Assembly (NCBI GenBank): GCA_020184695.1
Contig: JAANOX010000013.1
Span: 1 to 13,553 of the forward strand
Direction of reading: 5' to 3'
Source of the DNA: Histomonas meleagridis 2922-C6/04-290x
Taxonomy: Eukaryota > Protista > Parabasalia
Length of the DNA: 13,553 nucleotides
A program made the translations under genes and the position numbers. Positions 2,819 to 13,553 of the stretch are shown here, piece after piece. Under the pieces are notes generated by a model. The model searched no databases. It had not been told where the DNA came from and was given only the letters and a program-made list of their open reading frames with translations. Positions within the stretch are counted from its first letter, which is position 1, and each line of letters opens with the position of its first letter.

Positions 2819-3569
2819 TGAAAATTAACTGCAATTAAGTCTAAAAATAACAATTTAAAGAGAGTTATAATTAAAGGATATTGTGTTTTATTATCAAAAA
2901 AATGAAATTTAAAAAAAATATGAAAATTGAAATTTTCAAAAATTTTGAAATTTAATATAATAAATAATAGTAATCAACAACAATAAATGATTGTTATATT
3001 TAATAATGAATAAATTTAGTTTTAAATTAAAATTTTTATAATAATCAAATTTTTTAATTTCAAAATTTTGAAGTATAACAGCAATACTATAAGGTTAAAT
3101 AAAGTGAAGAAGAATTTTAAATAAAAGGAAATTAAAGAATAAAATAACGAGCGACCGTTAAGAGAATTAAAAAATAATTAATAAATAAAAAAGTTTAATA
3201 AATAAAAATTAAAAATAAAAATTGATAGTAAATAAAATGAATAAAATAAGATATAAAATATAAATTTAAACAATATTAAAAGATTTAAATAATTTTTAAA
3301 GTAATTAGATATCGATGAAAAAAATTAGGAAAAGAGAGAAAAAGAAGGAAAAAAGAAGAAATTAGAAGAGAAGTACAATTTAAAGCAATTAATTAAAGAT
3401 GTTATAATATATAAAACATTTAAAAATTTTACGGTTTTTTATGACGAAAAATTGAAATTTTCTCACCAAACTGAAGTAATATAACAAATGAAAGTATTAT
3501 TAAACAATAAGTCAGTAAGCAAAGTAAATAAAACAAGAGAAGAAGGAATAAAAAAATTTTAAGAAATAC

Positions 3570-3598
3570 TGACACTTTTCGTGTAAACCATTCAAAAA
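3570..3598 (+). promoter_or_regulatory. Candidate Pol I promoter-associated element
   Basis: TGACACTTTTCGTGTAAACCATTCAAAAA lies ~420 nt upstream of the 18S and closely matches TGTCACTTTTCGATAAACCATTGAAAAA at 9857. The function is inferred only. Confidence 0.25.
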
Positions 3599-3986
3599 AT
3601 TTTCAATACTTTACAAAAATAAAGTCTCCTAAAAACTTAATTGACAGGTTTATATTTCAAGCAAAAATTAGTGCTCTTGTCTATTAAAATTTTTACCTAT
3701 AAAAATGAAGTCGTTTTGCCCCTTATGAGGATAACAAGTAAAAAAATTCAGGAAAAAAATAAACTTAAAATAATTAAATAAAAATTAAATAGGAGAAACT
3801 CTATATTAATTATTCTTTATTTTTTTTCTATAAAAATAATAAAAGAAGCTTTATAATTTTAAAAGTAATTTAGGTTAATAAAAATAATATTAATTAATAA
3901 AGAATTTATTAAAATTATTTTTATTTATAATCAGTGGTAACAAATTAAAAAAAAAATTTATTAAATTATCAATTTTTGATTATTTA

Positions 3987-5300
3987 TACTTGGTTGATCC
4001 TGCCAAGGAAGCACACTATGGTCATAGATTAAGCCATGCAAGTGTAAGTTCAGGTAACTAAACTGCGAACAGCTCATTAACACACTTATTATCTACTTGG
4101 AAAAGATTTTTTAAAGAAATCATAAATGGATAGCAGAAGTAATTCTTGTGCTAATACATGTTTTTAAAATTTCATTGGAAATTAAATACAATGATAAATT
4201 TTTACCTTTTTATTAAGGAAATCCAATCGAATGAGTGACCTATCAGGCCAGTACTTAGGATCTTTTCCTAATTAAGCTATTACGGGTAACGGGCGGTTAC
4301 CGTCGTACTGCCGGAGAAGGCGCCTGAGAGATAGCGACTATATCCACGGGTAGCAGCAGGCGCGAAACTTACCCACTCGAAATTCTCGGAGGTGGTAATG
4401 ACCAGTTATAATTTTTATTTTTAATAATAAAATTATATAGGAATATAATTTTCCATTATATTGGAACCTAGCAGAGGGCCAGTCTGGTGCCAGCAGCTGC
4501 GGTAATTCCAGCTCTGCAAGTTTGCTCCCATATTGTTGCAGTTAAAACGCTCGTAGTCTGAATTAATATTAAGTAACTTTAAAAGGTTACGTTCACTGTG
4601 AACAAATCAGGACGCTTAAAGTAAGGATAAATATACTTGAATGATTTTGCGCAGTATGAAATTTTTATTTAACTTTCAGTAAAGTTAAATAAGATCAAAG
4701 AGATTCATCGGGGATAGATCTATTTCATGGCGAACGGCGAAATGTTTTGACCCATGAGAGAGAATGGGGGAACTACGACCGCAAGGCTGAAACTTGAAGG
4801 AATTGACGGAAGGGCACACCAGGGGTGGAGCTTGTGGCTTAATTTGAATCAACACGGGGAAACTTACCAGAACCAGATATTTTTAATGACTGATCAGGAT
4901 AAAGTTCTTTCAGGATATAATTTTTGGTGGTGCATGGCCGTTGGTGGTGCGTGGGTTGACCTGTCTAGCGTTGATTCAGATAACGAGCGAGATTATTACC
5001 AATTAAATAATTAATAATATTTTAAATATTAATATAATTTCTAATTGGGACTCCCTGCGTCTAAGCAGGAGGAAGAGGATAGCAATAACAGGTCCGTGAT
5101 GTCCTTTAGATGCTCTGGGCTGCACGCGCGCTACAATGTTAAAAACAATAAGAATAATTTAAAGCTAATTTGAAAAGATCATTTTTTAAATAAAATGAAA
5201 AGCTACTCTTATAATTTTTAACGTAGTTGGGATTGATGATTGTAATCATTATCATGAACCAGGAATCCCTTGTAAAAGTGTGTCAACAACGCACGTTGAA

Positions 5301-5346
<46 letters not shown>

Positions 5347-5469
5347 GATGACTCGGTGAAATCATTGGATTTTAAAAAAAAAAAAAAAGAAGGTGATTAA
5401 ATCACGTTATCTAGAGGAAGGAGAAGTCGTAACAAGGTAACGGTAGGTGAACCTGCCGTTGGATCAGTT
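3987..5469 (+). rRNA. 18S rRNA: 18S (SSU) rRNA, parabasalid type, with an internal deletion at 4764/4765
   Basis: 5' end TACTTGGTTGATCCTGCCAAGG; conserved GTGCCAGCAGCTGCGGTAATTCC, GGAATTGACGGAAGGGCAC and GTACACACCGCCCGTCGC; 3' end AAGTCGTAACAAGGTAACGGTAGGTGAACCTGCCGTTGGATCAGTT. The central h23-h26 segment is absent. Confidence 0.97.
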
Positions 5470-5542: not shown

Positions 5543-5701
5543 AAACCTTAAACAACGGATGTCTTGGCTCTTTACACGAAGAAGAACATTGCATAATGTG
5601 ATAAGCGACTAGATTAGCTCAATTTGTGATAAGTTCGATCTTTGAATGCATATTGCGTATTTATTAATTTATTAATAAATACATATATAATTTAGTAACA
5701 A
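5543..5701 (+). rRNA. 5.8S rRNA: 5.8S rRNA
   Basis: AAACCTTAAACAACGGATGTCTTGGCTC...GAAGAAC...GATCTTTGAATGCATATTGCG...AGTAAC matches trichomonad 5.8S motifs. The ends are approximate. Confidence 0.93.
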
Positions 5702-5757: not shown

Positions 5758-8613
5758 TAATTGTTCTAAATTATATAGGAAAACCCGCTGAACTGAAGCA
5801 TCTCAATAAGCGGAGGAAAATAAACTAACTAGGATACTCTTAGTAAGTGCGACCGAAGAGAGTAAAGCTCGATAATTTAAAATCTTTTTTTTTAGATTAA
5901 TGTAATTTATTAAACTTATTAATTAAAATATTAAACTATTGATTAAATACATGGCTATAAAGAGTTTAAGCCTCGTTACAATTATTTTAATTAAGCATAG
6001 GTTTAAATAAAGGAGTCGGATAGCTTGAGAATGCTATCTTAAAATAGGTAGTACATCCTATCTAAAGCTAAATATTGTAAAGAGACCGATAGTATACAAG
6101 TAGTGTGAACGAAAGATGAAAAGAACTCCTAAACGGAGAGTTAATAGCGCCTGAACTTGTTTAGGGTAAGGTATTTCATTAATACACCCGTCTTGAAACA
6201 CGGATTAGGGAGTTTGACTATAATACGAGTATTTAATTATTAAAATTTAAATGCGAAAAGAAATTAACTGCTCTTTTTTTTTGGAGATGGCTATAGAGTA
6301 TTATTGTCAAAACCCGAATGGAGGTGAACTATGCCTGTACAGATTGAAGTCAGGGGAAACTCTGATGGAAGATCGTCTGCGTTATTGATGTGCAAATCAT
6401 TTGCTTGATATGGGTATAGGTGCGAAAGACTCATCGAACCTCCTAATAGCTGGTTTCCTCCGAATTTTTCCCTAAGGATAGCTGTAATATTTATTAATAG
6501 TTAAGGAGAGTAGAGAAATGGGTAGAGGTGTAGTGGAACTCCGGTTCTGCAACTTATTTCCAAACTTCGAACCTTCTTAAAATGAATAATTTTTCTTAAA
6601 GAAATTAATCATCTTTGAATATATATTACAAGTGGGCTCTTACCGGTAAGCGGTTATGGCGAAAAGGGATGAACCTAACGTATAGATAAAGTGCCTAAAT
6701 TTACTATTAATGAAACCATTAAGAGAGTCCATGTATTTAGACAGCGGGTCGGTGCCCCTAAAAGCAGGTATCCGTTAATGAGTGTGTTAAAACTCCCCCG
6801 CCGAATACTCTGGCCTCGAAAATGAATGGCGCATATAGTAATTACTGATACTATACAAATAATTTTTAATTAATTATTTAGTAGGGGGATGTGAATAACT
6901 TGAAGAATTTTTAAATGTAAATTTAAATTAAAAGTTATTTATTACAAATCCTAATTGAAGTAGCGATTATCCAGGTTAAAATCCTGGGGGCTGATGAGGA
7001 GTAGGGTTTCTGGGCAACTTAAATAGACCCAGAGTTAGTCGAACCTAATTTCAATAAAGAAAGAAAGGGAATATGAATGATATTTCATAACTAAAAATTT
7101 TTTTTAATAAATAGTGGTAACACAAATTTAAAAAATTATCAATATTAATTAAATACTGTAAATAATAGGGATTTCTTTCCTATATAACTTTAATTATTTC
7201 CTAAGAATCAAATCAATTGGAGAATAGTTGAAATAATTTAGTAAAACTTAAAATTCGTTTTAAGTTACGGCTATTTAATTAATCCTTGAAAAGATAATTT
7301 AAACGAAAAAATTTTTACTCGTACCGATAACCGCATCAGGTCTTCAAGGTAAGTAGCTTCTGGCCATTAAGTTATAATAATTTAGGGAATTCGGCCAATT
7401 AGAGCTGTAACTTCGGGATAAAGCTTGGCTCTGATGGAAATCAGAACCGATAGTTACAAGGAGAGCCCAACTGTTTAATAAAAACTTAGTATTATGTAAT
7501 TACTAATAAAAGTATTAAACATAATATGAATCCTGCTCAGTGCTGTGTTTGTTAACTTGGAAAAATTCAATTAAGCGCCGGTAAATAGCTGGGGTAACTA
7601 TGACTCTTATCAAAGTAGCGAAATACCTCGTCACTTAATTAGTGACCTGCATGAACGGAGCTATGAGGTTCTCACTGTCCCAAATTATTACTTAGCGAAC
7701 CAACAGTTGTGGGAACGGGCACAAATTATCCAGCGGGGAAAGAAGACCCTGTAGAGCTTCACTTTGGTCTAATTTTGTATAGTTTCGTTAGGGGTGCAGA
7801 CTAGGTGGGACATTTAATAAATGGATTATGAGAAACCACTACCCTTTCTGGAATTATACTTACTTTTTAATTAAAAGGATAGAATTAGATAGAAAGTTTG
7901 GCTGGGGCGGCACACCTTCGAAAAAGCAGCGAAGGTGTCCTAAGTTAAGCTCAGTAAGGACAGAAATCTTACGTTGAGGATAAGGCCAAAAGCTTAATTT
8001 ACTGTGTCTTTTTTTGTACTAGAATCAGTTATGAAAGTAAGGCCTAACGATCCCTAATTAGTCTTAGGTATGTAAGACTTGGGGTGACAGACAAGTTACC
8101 TCCGGGACAACTGGCTTGTGGCTGCTAAGAGATCAAATCAACGCAGCTTTTTGATTCTTCGATGTCGGCTCTTCCTATCCTAGTGATGTATAAGTCACTA
8201 AGGGTTGGATTGTTCACCCGTATTAGGGATCGTGAGCTGGGTTTAGACCGTCGTGAGCCAGGTTTGTTTTTATCCTACTGGATATTTATATTAAGTATCA
8301 TGTTAGTAGTTTGATTTAGTACGAGAGGAACTGTTGATTATGGTCTCTGGTTAAGGAATTTTAGGAAACTAAATGTTCCAAAGCTACGCCATCTGAGATA
8401 ATGGCTGAAGGCCTCTTAAGCCAGAAACTCTTCTAAAAATTGATACTTTAAAACTATTTTAAAATTATGAGATAAAATTAATATATTTTTAAATAAAAAT
8501 CTCTTTAGTTTTAATGACCAAATGTAGAAGACATTTTGTCAACTAGGGTCCTGTAAGTGTAAGAGTGGCATTTAGTCACGATTCACTGAGGGTCAGCCTA
8601 AGTTGTATGGTTA
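5758..8613 (+). rRNA. 28S rRNA: 28S (LSU) rRNA, compact (~2.85 kb), no introns seen
   Basis: ACCCGCTGAACTGAAGCATCTCAATAAGCGGAGG (5783), ACCCGTCTTGAAACACGGA (6186), peptidyl-transferase motif TTCGATGTCGGCTCTTCC, sarcin-ricin loop AGTACGAGAGGAAC (8318-8331), and a 3' motif CACGATTCACTGAG. The ends are approximate. Confidence 0.97.
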
Positions 8614-8664
8614 TTATAATGTAATTTAAAAAAAAATTTTTTTCAATTTTTTTTACTTATTTTT

Positions 8665-8675: not shown

Positions 8676-9095
8676 TAAAAATTCAAAATATTTTGTATAC
8701 TTTATTATTATAATGAATTATTCTTAATATTATTTTTTCATCAATTTTGACAGAATTCAATTGTTATTTGGTCTGAAATACAAAATAAACTATTTAAAAA
8801 GTCTAATTTTTTACATTATTGGGGTGCTGCACAGCAAAAATCATCAAAATTTTCAAAATTTTTTAAATTGCATTTTTAAACTTACTAACTAATGACATTC
8901 ATGCTTTCTTATGATCATTTTACTTAATTTTCATTTTTTTTTGAAATATTCTAATTATTAATAATTAATTCTAATTTTTAAAATTAATCATAAATTCATC
9001 TTGAATTCATGATTTTAAGTATTTTTTATTAAGATAATTTTTGATGAAAATCAATTTAAAATATTCTTTATAAAAAAAATATTTTATGTTTTTTC
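8665..9095 (+). repeat. IGS subrepeat family C, copy C1
   Basis: TCATCAATTTTGACAGAATTC...GGGGTGCTGCACAGCAAAAATCATC; GGGGTGCTGC at 8821 vs 9276 (offset 455). Confidence 0.8.
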
Positions 9096-9549
9096 ATCCG
9101 ACCAGATAATATTTCACATCACATGTCTCTTGACACTTTTTGTAAACTAGTCAAAAGAAATTTGAAAAATTTTCATAAAAATTTCCAATTTTTCATCAAT
9201 TTTGACAGAATTCAATTGTTATTTGGTCAAAAATATCAAATAAACTATTTAAAAAGTCTAATTTTTTACATTAATGGGGTGCTGCACAGCAAAAATCATC
9301 AAAATTTTCAAAATTTCAAAAATCTATTTTTTAAACTTAATATCAGTAGTACTTCTCATGTTTTAATGATCATTTTGCTTAATTTTTCAATTTTTATTGA
9401 GATTTTCTAATTATTAATAATTAATTCTAATTTTTAAAATTAATCATAAATTCATCTATAAAATATGATTTTGAACAATTTTTATTAAGATGATTTTCAT
9501 CAAATATCATTTTGAAATATTCTTTTTTAATTAAATAAATATTTCTTAT
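9096..9549 (+). repeat. IGS subrepeat family C, copy C2
   Basis: Colinear with C1 and ends at the first TTAACGGTCA (9550). Confidence 0.8.
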
Positions 9550-9791
9550 TTAACGGTCATTTCAAAGGAAAAATTAACGGTCAATTAGAAATCAAAATTA
9601 ACGGTCAATTAAAATGAAAATTAACGGTCAATTAAAATAAGAATTAACGGTCAATCAAGAAGAAATTAACGGTCAATTAAAATAAGAATTAACGGTCAAT
9701 CAAAAATGTAAATTAACGGTCACTTAAACATAAAATTAACGGTCACTTAAACTTAAAGTTAACGGTCATTTAAAATAGAAGTTAACGATCA
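9550..9791 (+). repeat. Tandem array of 11 TTAACGGTCA motifs, period 22-24 nt
   Basis: Motif starts at 9550, 9574, 9598, 9621, 9644, 9666, 9689, 9713, 9736, 9759 and 9782 (the last is TTAACGATCA), separated by A-rich linkers. Confidence 0.95.
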
Positions 9792-10068
9792 TTTTGCGTA
9801 GAAATTATTTGACTAAGTCTGTTCGACCGAGTAATTTTTCACATCACATTTCAATGTGTCACTTTTCGATAAACCATTGAAAAAGTCGAATCTGACACTA
9901 ATTTTTCCTTTATTGTTTCTGCCTTCCTTTATTCGCATTTTTAAACTTAGAATGTTCAGTATTTATGCTCTAATATCCTAATTTCCCTTAATTTTCTATT
10001 TCTTCCTATTTCATCTAAAAAATCAAAAATTAACGGTCACCCATTAACAAATTATTTTGTTTAGGTTT

Positions 10069-10488
10069 GTTCGACTAGATAATATTTCACATAATATGTC
10101 TGTTTAAAATCATATCGTACTTTTTGTAAATCAGTGAAAATCCCATCGGTATTTATTTAATGAATGTAAAAAATAAACTATTCAAAAAACAATTTCGAAT
10201 TTTGCTGTGCAGGAACACAGCAAAAATCATCAAAATTTTCAAAAATTCAAAAATTGCATTTTTAAACTTAATACCTAATGGCATTCATATGTTCTTATGA
10301 TTATTTTGCTTAATTTTTGATTTTCATCGAGATTTTCTAATTATTAATAATTAATTCAAAAATTCAAAATTAATCATAAAATCATGCTTAAAATCAAATT
10401 TTTAGTATTTTTTATTAAGATGATTTTCATCAAAAATCATTTTAAAAATTTGTTTTTAATTAAAAAAAAAATATTTTATTAACGGTCA
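10069..10488 (+). repeat. IGS subrepeat family C, copy C3 (more diverged)
   Basis: CACAGCAAAAATCATCAAAATTTTC at 10216 and TAAGATGATTTTCATCAAA as in C2. Like C2, it ends with TTAACGGTCA (10479). Confidence 0.75.
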
Positions 10489-11300: not shown

Positions 11301-12600
11301 AAGTATAGAATAGAAAATTATTTTAAAATTAAATTAATTTCATTTTATAATTAAAATATTTAAATTTATTTAATAAATTTATTTAATAATATTTTTAAAT
11401 TTTATTATATTATCAAAAAATTTAAAATTTATTCAATTTAAAAAAATTGATCTTAAATTTAAAAAATTTTAAAATTAATTAAATTGAATAATTTTTATTT
11501 TATATAATACTTTAAAAATATTCTTAAATTATTTTAAACTTAATTTTACTTAATATTATTTATATAATCTAATAAATTCATTTTAATGTTGAAATTTTTC
11601 AAAGTTTTTGTTTTATTAAAAAAGTTTTTTTATAATTAATATTTTAATTAATAATATAGTTATTAATATATTAGAGCATTTAATTAATAATATTTATTAT
11701 TAAATTAATTGATTTTAAATTATGAAATAAAAATTTTTTTAATAAGTGAAAATTTTAAGAGGTATTTTAAGTCTGAAAAAATCTACATTTCTTATATATA
11801 TTTTTAAAAATAAATGAAAAAAATTTTTTTAAAGTTTTAAAAATAGAATTTTTTAATATAAAAATTATAGATTTATTAATAAAACATTTAAATTTAAAAT
11901 ATTTTTAAAATATTTTTATTAAAATTATTGATTTTTAACATTTTTCAATTTTTTCATAATTTTAATAGAAAATTATCAAATAGAATGATTTTATTAAAAT
12001 ATAGTATATAAATATTTTATAAAATATTAAAAATTATGATTATAATTTATTAATATTATTAATGAATTAATTATATATAAAAAATTATAATCAATTTTTT
12101 AAAATTCCTGCATGGCGACCGTTAAGAACAAAAATTAAAATAACTTTATAATTAAATAATATTTGATAATTTAATCAATAAATTTAATTTTATTGTTTTA
12201 ATATTTAATTAATTATTTAATTAAAATTACAAAATATTTTAAATTAATAATTTTTTTTATTAAATTATTTAAAAATCCTTAACGGTCGCCACAATATTTT
12301 AATTTATTAAAAAAAATTTTGAATTCTTAAAATTTTTTAAAATTTAATACATTATTAAATTAAATTTAATTCATATTTATTATCTTTATATTCAAAATTT
12401 TGATTTTTTAAAATTTTGAAATATCTAAATTTATTCATAAAAAAGTGAAAATTTCATTATACTTTAAGTAAAAAAAGTTTTAATTTATTCCTAATGTTTA
12501 AAAATATTTAATCTTTTAATAAAAATATCTTAAAAAATTCAAAATTAATTTTTATTCATTTCATGAATTTTGATTTTTTTTAAATCATTTTATATTATAT
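11300..12600. other. Extremely AT-rich low-complexity spacer tract
   Basis: Almost devoid of G/C except for the two inverted-repeat arms; no ORFs in the track. Confidence 0.85.
12113..12291. repeat. Perfect 14-bp inverted repeat pair (TGGCGACCGTTAAG ... CTTAACGGTCGCCA) with a 151-nt AT-rich spacer
   Basis: The arms at 12113-12126 and 12278-12291 are exact reverse complements. Confidence 0.9.
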
Positions 12601-12603
12601 TCG

Positions 12604-13553
12604 TAATCATTTTGGCACTAAATTATAATTTTATTGTTAATAATTTTAGATGTTGGATAGTTCGGTCTGCTATGGGGGTACCTAAAAAAAGATTGGAATG
12701 CCTTGAAATCAATAAACATTAATTTTTTTCGTAATAATGATATTATTATTTATTACTTGATTGTTTATGTGTATGTTAATTCATTTTGTGGAAATTATTA
12801 TTATTTTAGTACGTAAAAATTATTCATTTTAAATGTTGATTTTTGCATTAATATTGTTGTTAAATTTTATCTATGTGTTAGTTATTTAAGGTTGTCGTTA
12901 TTAATTTTTGTTTTAATCCTTAAATTATTTCAAATTTTTCATTTGAAATGATTAGTTGAGAAAAAATTGAAAATTTGATTGAATTCATTGTTTTAACAAT
13001 GTTATAAACTAGTTGTGTCTTAAATTAATACTTTAAATTAACTTTCTTTTGTCAATTTAGTTCGTTTGTAATCTATTTTTGTGTCACTTTTTGACATTCA
13101 AATAAGACGTTAATAATGTCAGTTTTAAATATACCTCAGAAATAATGTTTTAAAATCAAAAAGAATGTTTTAAAATCAATTTTGTTCAAAATTCTAAGTA
13201 AAAAATATTCACTAATGTTGTTGTATTACTCAAAAATATCAAAAAATCGATTTTTATTAAAATTGAAAATTACTCAATTTTGACAAATTTTGAATTTAAT
13301 GGAAGAAAAAAAACTAGGATTTTGCAAGAATATTTTGTTTACTTCGAATTGTATTGTCTAAAAAAACTATATTTTGAATAATTTTGTCAAATATAGAAAT
13401 GTCAGAAAAATATTGGAAATTATTAGTTTTAATACTTTAAAACATTGTTTAATTGACTCTGTAGATTTCATTTTTCAATTTATTAGTAAATTTTCAAATT
13501 TTTATTTGGATGGAAATTCGAAGATTTTGAACTCAATAAACATTAATTTTTTT
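12604..13553 (+). repeat. Start of the next rDNA unit (or terminal overlap of a circular contig); copy of 1-950
   Basis: Direct visual alignment to 1-950 gives about 25-30 substitutions and no net indel. Confidence 0.93.

Follow-up and report, generated by a model that had tools for sequence, protein, structure and literature searches.

Organization of the rDNA unit

The window, i.e. the whole stretch of 13,553 nt analysed here, consists of one 12.6-kb rDNA repeat, very probably of Histomonas meleagridis, in which the 18S rRNA gene carries a clean internal deletion of 168 bp. A single rDNA transcription unit is detected by Rfam, on the + strand; no ORF of at least 100 codons is present anywhere in the window, and the G+C content of the spacers is 8-23%. 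The main features are listed below.

1-950, + strand: spacer, recurring at 12604-13553 with 97.2% identity (25 substitutions, 2 indels)
3987-5469, + strand: 18S rRNA gene, deleted form (Rfam RF01960, 973 bits, model positions 1-1831)
5544-5700, + strand: 5.8S rRNA gene, intact (Rfam)
5761-8615, + strand: 28S rRNA gene, collinear with that of relatives and free of large gaps (Rfam, alignment to relatives)

The unit measures 12,603 bp, and the window covers 1.07 repeats. Since the two spacer copies found at the window ends differ, neighbouring rDNA units can be told apart and are not identical in the spacer; the 25 substitutions also indicate that the contig retains repeat-specific variants, instead of an average over all repeats.

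The 18S gene is matched over the full-length span of the RF01960 covariance model, above its gathering score. Its length, set at about 1483 nt by the initial annotation, is exactly 1483 nt in the Rfam match, and becomes about 1651 nt when the missing piece is restored. When compared to relatives, ITS, 5.8S and 28S are aligned in a single collinear block: the contig features no further structural error.

Repeated sequences are also found in the spacers. An array of about 11 copies, with a phase of 22-24 nt and a unit containing TTAACGGTCA, is located downstream of the 28S gene, at 9541-9819, while families of sub-repeats, with periods of about 824, 606 and 456 nt, occupy positions 89-2818 and 8734-10465.

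The deletion junction and the lost helices

The localization of the deletion, relative to the helices of the SSU rRNA model, was obtained from cmscan and local covariance-model alignments; the relevant features are the following.

4539-4558, + strand: 5' strands of h19 and h20/h21, whose 3' partners are gone (cmscan structure line)
4701-4718, + strand: 5' strands of the h22/h23 base helices, whose 3' partners are gone (cmscan structure line)
4719-4763, + strand: retained h23 hairpin, with a GCGAAAU loop equivalent to the 690 loop (cmscan alignment)
4764/4765, + strand: deletion junction, where 168 nt of conspecific rDNA are absent (insert present in contigs L013-L021; reference L015:1865-2032)
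4765-4793, + strand: right flank, with the second half of the h19 3' strand (TG), followed by h27 (cmscan alignments)

The motif terminated by CCCATGAGAGAGAA ends at 4764 and is directly abutted by TGGGGGAACTACGACC, which begins at 4765. This direct joining had been pointed out by the initial annotation, and its coordinates are correct, as judged from both the alignments and the breaks in BLAST matches. The annotation had estimated that some 165-175 nt of the central domain are missing: the comparison with conspecific contigs gives 168 nt. The junction is blunt: neither microhomology at the 4764/4765 breakpoints nor a spacer between the flanks is found.

Seen from the Rfam model, positions from about 940 to about 1114 are absent; in the local covariance-model alignment, 126 model positions face 3 bases at the junction. 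The deletion starts after 4764, two bases past the closing pair of the h23 hairpin, and ends inside the 3' strand of h19, of which the first half is removed. Between these points are lost h23a, the 3' strands of h20-h22, h24, h25-h26 and half of the h19 3' strand, an assignment, already proposed in the initial annotation, with which the Rfam alignments agree. According to the alignment to the Rfam model, the missing segment includes the GCGAAAGC hairpin, which follows h23, and the h24 sequence GAUCAGAGACC, which forms the 790 loop. For h19-h22 only one strand is removed, not whole helices: the 5' strands of the nested helices remain at 4549-4558 and 4701-4718, facing deleted 3' strands. The 18S gene of the window is therefore without the complete central domain that characterizes eukaryotic SSU rRNAs.

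The missing segment is not found elsewhere in the window on either strand, as had been reported from inspection of the letters. Neither strand contains the 790-loop or the TAAACGATGCCGAC motif, and the 168-nt segment, when compared to the window by local BLAST, generates only chance matches of 9-14 nt, rich in A+T. The corresponding segment of a relative, taken with flanks of 30 nt (L002:810-1036), shares none of its 197 words with the window; it is contained at full share in at least 20 sewage-sludge RNA runs.

Three ways of producing such a deletion were considered and discarded. A hairpin-mediated event is suggested by a CCCATGA/TCATGGG pair, located near the breakpoints in the minimum-energy DNA fold; this fold, however, is no better than those of shuffled sequences (z = +1.3), and the centroid structure does not contain the pair. 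Excision by a contamination screen is unlikely, because the right flank, which is even more conserved, has been retained. End-trimming by racon was dropped as a cause, since this program would be expected to trim only windows of long reads.

Open reading frames across the junction

A spurious ORF spans the junction, and was used only as a handle for searches.

4754-5014, + strand: spurious ORF of 86 codons across the junction

A full-length form of this ORF, P0060, was found in the protein collection. The two share all 82 residues encoded downstream of the junction, while their N-termini differ (MGS... in P0060, MREN... in the window): the start codon of P0060 lies inside the missing segment. 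According to the collection look-up, P0060 is present on 14 contigs. The products of the junction ORFs, on both strands, are instead found in no assembly of this collection, which contains 15 billion proteins; no match was obtained there for eight window ORFs, the two junction ORFs among them, that were looked up by exact sequence.

A different deleted form was met in the same searches. P0008 and P0076-P0079, from Logan, ENA and NCBI contigs of related trichomonads, are spurious 18S ORFs in which a stretch of 30 codons (90 nt), flanked by two GGGG(G)AAC repeats, is missing. In this cluster h27-h30 are missing; the ends of this other internally deleted 18S form feature microhomology, unlike the window junction.

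The full-length form in conspecific and related sequences

Ten of the 14 contigs carrying P0060 (L013-L022), derived from ten different runs or assemblies, were compared to positions 3000-5290 of the window. Their identity is 99.0-99.8%, with about 1 kb of upstream spacer included. All contigs reaching the left flank (L013-L021) contain an insert of 168 nt, located exactly at 4764/4765; for L022, the shortest one, the alignment covers 4765-5142 only. Eight contigs share the same insert sequence, from which two others depart at a single polymorphic position. When the insert is present, the central domain is aligned to the Rfam model without gaps, and the homologous stretch scores 444 bits, versus 227 bits without it.

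Over about 1300 compared nucleotides, the 18S gene of the window differs from the conspecific ones at only two other places, 4199 and 5031-5034. The former is one extra T in a run of T; the latter, in a variable region, is a small A/T change, involving three positions. Both may reflect strain variation or residual consensus errors.

Related sequences were collected by scanning metagenome contigs with the 21-mer located just upstream of the junction: 11 parabasalid loci, mostly from human-gut assemblies, were found. All 11 are split by BLAST into two blocks exactly at 4764/4765. In the gut-metagenome parabasalids, 79-90% identical to the window, 165-167 additional nucleotides separate the blocks. 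The statement of the initial annotation, that in relatives the flanking motifs are separated by the segment containing the 790 loop, holds for these sequences as well as for the 168 nt of the conspecific ones.

Two of the contigs of relatives have a peculiar arrangement. In L004 (JAEEGH010071106.1, 5718 nt) a parabasalid 18S gene, on the minus strand, is split over the contig ends, with its 5' part at 875-129 and its 3' part at 5521-4858; the contig is thus a single, circularly permuted rDNA unit of some 5.7 kb. In L001, a human-gut contig, a second, far more divergent 18S-like stretch (11356-12760, 69-81% identity) is located about 10 kb downstream of the rDNA unit of a relative: a divergent second unit, or a chimeric contig, may account for it.

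Published PCR assays

Two published assays amplify the affected region from genomic DNA. The corresponding sites in the window are:

5158-5180, - strand: exact site of primer Hmr (sequence match)
4544-4972, + strand: span from 18S-F (15 nt of its 3' part) to 18S-R, 429 nt in the window versus 597 nt in full-length contigs (primers of Bilic et al. 2014)

The Hmf/Hmr pair is diagnostic for H. meleagridis, and is expected to generate a product of 574 bp (PMC4539355). The exact Hmr match, the identity of 99% or more to the conspecific contigs, the A+T richness and the set of runs containing the sequence (two DNA samples of 2021, with two runs each, and RNA runs of cultures) make it very probable that the window derives from this species; the last two features agree with its published genome project (PMC8529796). 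The Hmf site occupies insert positions 9-29; in the window no such site is found, even when three mismatches are allowed. A product of 577 bp is accordingly predicted from full-length contigs, and none from the window. When genome and viral contigs were scanned for Hmf, a single chance match, to a Vibrio genome, was obtained.

The last 3' base of the Hmf site (insert position 29, L015:1893) is variable: eight contigs have C and L020 has G, the A of the primer being found in L022 only. With a mismatch at the 3' terminus of Hmf, the standard PCR could be less sensitive for certain strains or genotypes.

With the 18S-F/18S-R pair, Bilic et al. 2014 obtained a product of 603 bp from 197 samples collected in the field, as well as from six clonal cultures (PMC3962415); the latter came from the same clinic as the genome strain, which was taken from its culture collection. 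The site for 18S-R is matched exactly in the window. If 18S-F has six further 5' bases, as is inferred from the size of the product, 603 bp would be expected from full-length genes and about 435 bp from the window. The products were sequenced directly, without double peaks; bands of the expected size were excised from gels, and no second band, shorter by 168 bp, is reported in the PCR studies (PMC3962415).

Both the 574-bp and the 603-bp genomic products require that the segment be contiguous with both flanks: they fit the full-length gene only.

Origin of the deleted copy

Since the gene of the species has the 168 nt in place, the 18S copy of the window, judged from its sequence, is not the working 18S gene of the organism. 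The reading preferred here, given about an even chance of being right, is that a young, non-functional repeat is truly present in the rDNA array of the sequenced culture. The deletion would then probably exist in the cells, not in the assembly only, and the copy carrying it is presumably inactive. The long-read assembly would have taken the deleted repeat as representative of the array, and polishing with short reads of 150 nt would have been unable to fill in the 168 nt.

The small subunit cannot function without the platform helices and the 790 loop. RNA transcribed from the deleted copy would have no platform, for want of h24 and its 790 loop, of h25-h26 and of the h19-h22 3' strands; unable to form a central domain, it would presumably be discarded. 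The expectation that the subunit is inactivated is reinforced by the presence of orphan 5' strands, in place of the removal of whole helices.

Of two marks expected of a defective repeat, one, the loss of a functionally indispensable element, is found in the platform helices and in the 790 loop. The other, further decay, is not: only two small differences are seen in about 1300 nt. The small number of other differences in the 18S gene, together with the collinearity of the 28S gene, suggests a unit that is healthy in other respects, and a young deletion. An old pseudogene is ruled out by the absence of any other decay in the 18S gene. If real, the defective copy would be either recent or kept homogenised with the others.

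The multicopy nature of H. meleagridis rDNA is indicated by a delta-Ct of about 7.4 between an 18S and a single-copy assay, which corresponds to an order of 100 or more copies, although only roughly, because the assays differ (PMC8529796). The retention of repeat-specific spacer variants in the contig speaks for the defective-repeat reading. This reading is weakened by the absence of the junction ORFs from public assemblies and by the lack of reports of a shorter PCR band; moreover, a minority variant would make an odd consensus, if no other rDNA contig existed in the assembly. The blunt junction bears on it too: neither replication slippage nor microhomology-mediated repair would usually leave a junction without microhomology, and an artefact of software or reads fits it equally well.

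Such an artefact is the main alternative: a substantial possibility, rated somewhat under even. All or nearly all repeats would contain the 168 nt, which would have been lost when the array collapsed to a contig of 13.5 kb, either because an aberrant long read served as backbone, or because the block was dropped by a consensus step; short-read polishing would not have rescued it. The published genome of the species was assembled from ONT reads by Flye, with the --meta option, and then polished with 150-nt Illumina reads in three racon rounds, the mapping being done by minimap2 with default parameters (PMC8529796). As reads of 150 nt cannot re-insert 168 nt, the deletion stays, however it entered the draft. 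This agrees with an artefact, as do the blunt junction, the identity of the rest of the gene to functional copies and the failure to find the junction ORFs in any public assembly of the collection. Only 0.70-0.88 of the 18S words of the window, moreover, are contained in the organism's DNA and RNA runs, and a shorter PCR band has not been reported, although the bands of expected size were cut from gels.

Two points argue against an artefact. An assembly that drops a block might be expected to contain other structural errors, and none comparable is found in the rest of the contig (ITS, 5.8S and 28S). Secondly, the polishing of a consensus built from many reads normally restores an insertion present in the majority of them. 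The Flye polisher follows, for each segment, the median read length; the survival of the deletion thus suggests that reads carrying it existed, as predicted by a young defective repeat.

A third possibility is that the deleted repeat is real and also abundant, making up a quarter or more of the repeats of the long-passaged clonal line, and transcribed: unequal exchange would have carried the defective rDNA across the array. Such abundance would agree with the usual tendency of a consensus to reflect the majority state. The share of window 18S words is 0.88 in the best DNA run, versus 0.85-0.86 in the best RNA runs, a gap too small to be interpreted. Field contigs, in contrast, are all full-length, the junction ORF is found in no assembly of the collection, and the clonal cultures gave clean 603-bp products without double peaks (PMC3962415). 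The abundant variant is therefore considered very unlikely. If true, a viable parabasalid would be expressing many 18S copies unable to build the platform of the small subunit, and would offer a natural system for the study of rDNA drift and of the disposal of defective pre-ribosomes.

A split SSU rRNA, or one reduced in evolution, with the missing piece supplied by another gene or dispensed with, has a negligible probability: it is favoured by nothing more than an assembled gene that is without the segment yet otherwise intact, and is opposed by the segment found in place in the conspecific rDNA of ten independent assemblies, by the 574-bp and 603-bp genomic products, by the absence of both a junction spacer and a copy of the piece in the window, and by a cut that runs through the h19 3' strand, leaving the h19-h22 5' strands unpaired, unlike reductions, which remove whole helices. 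At the species level, a split or platform-less 18S as the norm is refuted by the continuous conspecific gene and by the PCR products. The initial annotation had ranked a defective unit and a misassembly above a split rRNA: this order is supported, the split reading being contradicted by the conspecific contigs and by the PCR sizes.

Comparison with known systems

The 18S gene of the window is either a dead copy or the product of an assembly error, and does not represent a new type of ribosome. Both a dead repeat in multicopy rDNA and a 168-bp assembly error are ordinary, and carry little biological weight. The practical consequences are more direct: an 18S sequence taken from this contig for phylogeny, reference databases or primer design comes without the central domain and without the Hmf site.

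The closest known sequences are the full-length 18S genes of H. meleagridis found in L013-L022. They share with the window an identity of 99.0-99.8%, which includes the upstream spacer, and exact sites for Hmr and 18S-R; they differ from it by the 168 nt at 4764/4765, and at 4199 and 5031-5034.

Fragmented rRNA genes are known for the LSU of Euglena and for the mitochondrial rRNAs of Chlamydomonas and apicomplexans. In these systems the rRNA is made of separate modules, with breaks located in variable regions, and such an arrangement is normal for the species. Similarly to them, in the window a block of conserved rRNA is missing from its expected place. In the window, however, the flanks are fused inside a conserved structure, without breaks in variable regions that would leave whole modules, and conspecific genes are intact, so that the discontinuity is not the normal arrangement of the species. 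A reduced rRNA, in turn, would have lost whole helices throughout its lineage, while both conspecifics and relatives are full-length.

Errors of long-read assembly in collapsed repeats also resemble the window: a contig of 1.07 units stands for about 100 or more repeats, and the indel is longer than a short read and invisible to polishing. The contig differs from them in having no other structural error.

Defective or non-canonical repeats, either inactivated by insertions or rearranged, are found in the multicopy rDNA arrays of insects and humans. The copy of the window would resemble them, as a single repeat of a high-copy array with a lesion expected to render its product useless, and with its remainder as in working repeats; its putative lesion differs in being a blunt deletion of 168 bp in the central domain of the SSU gene.
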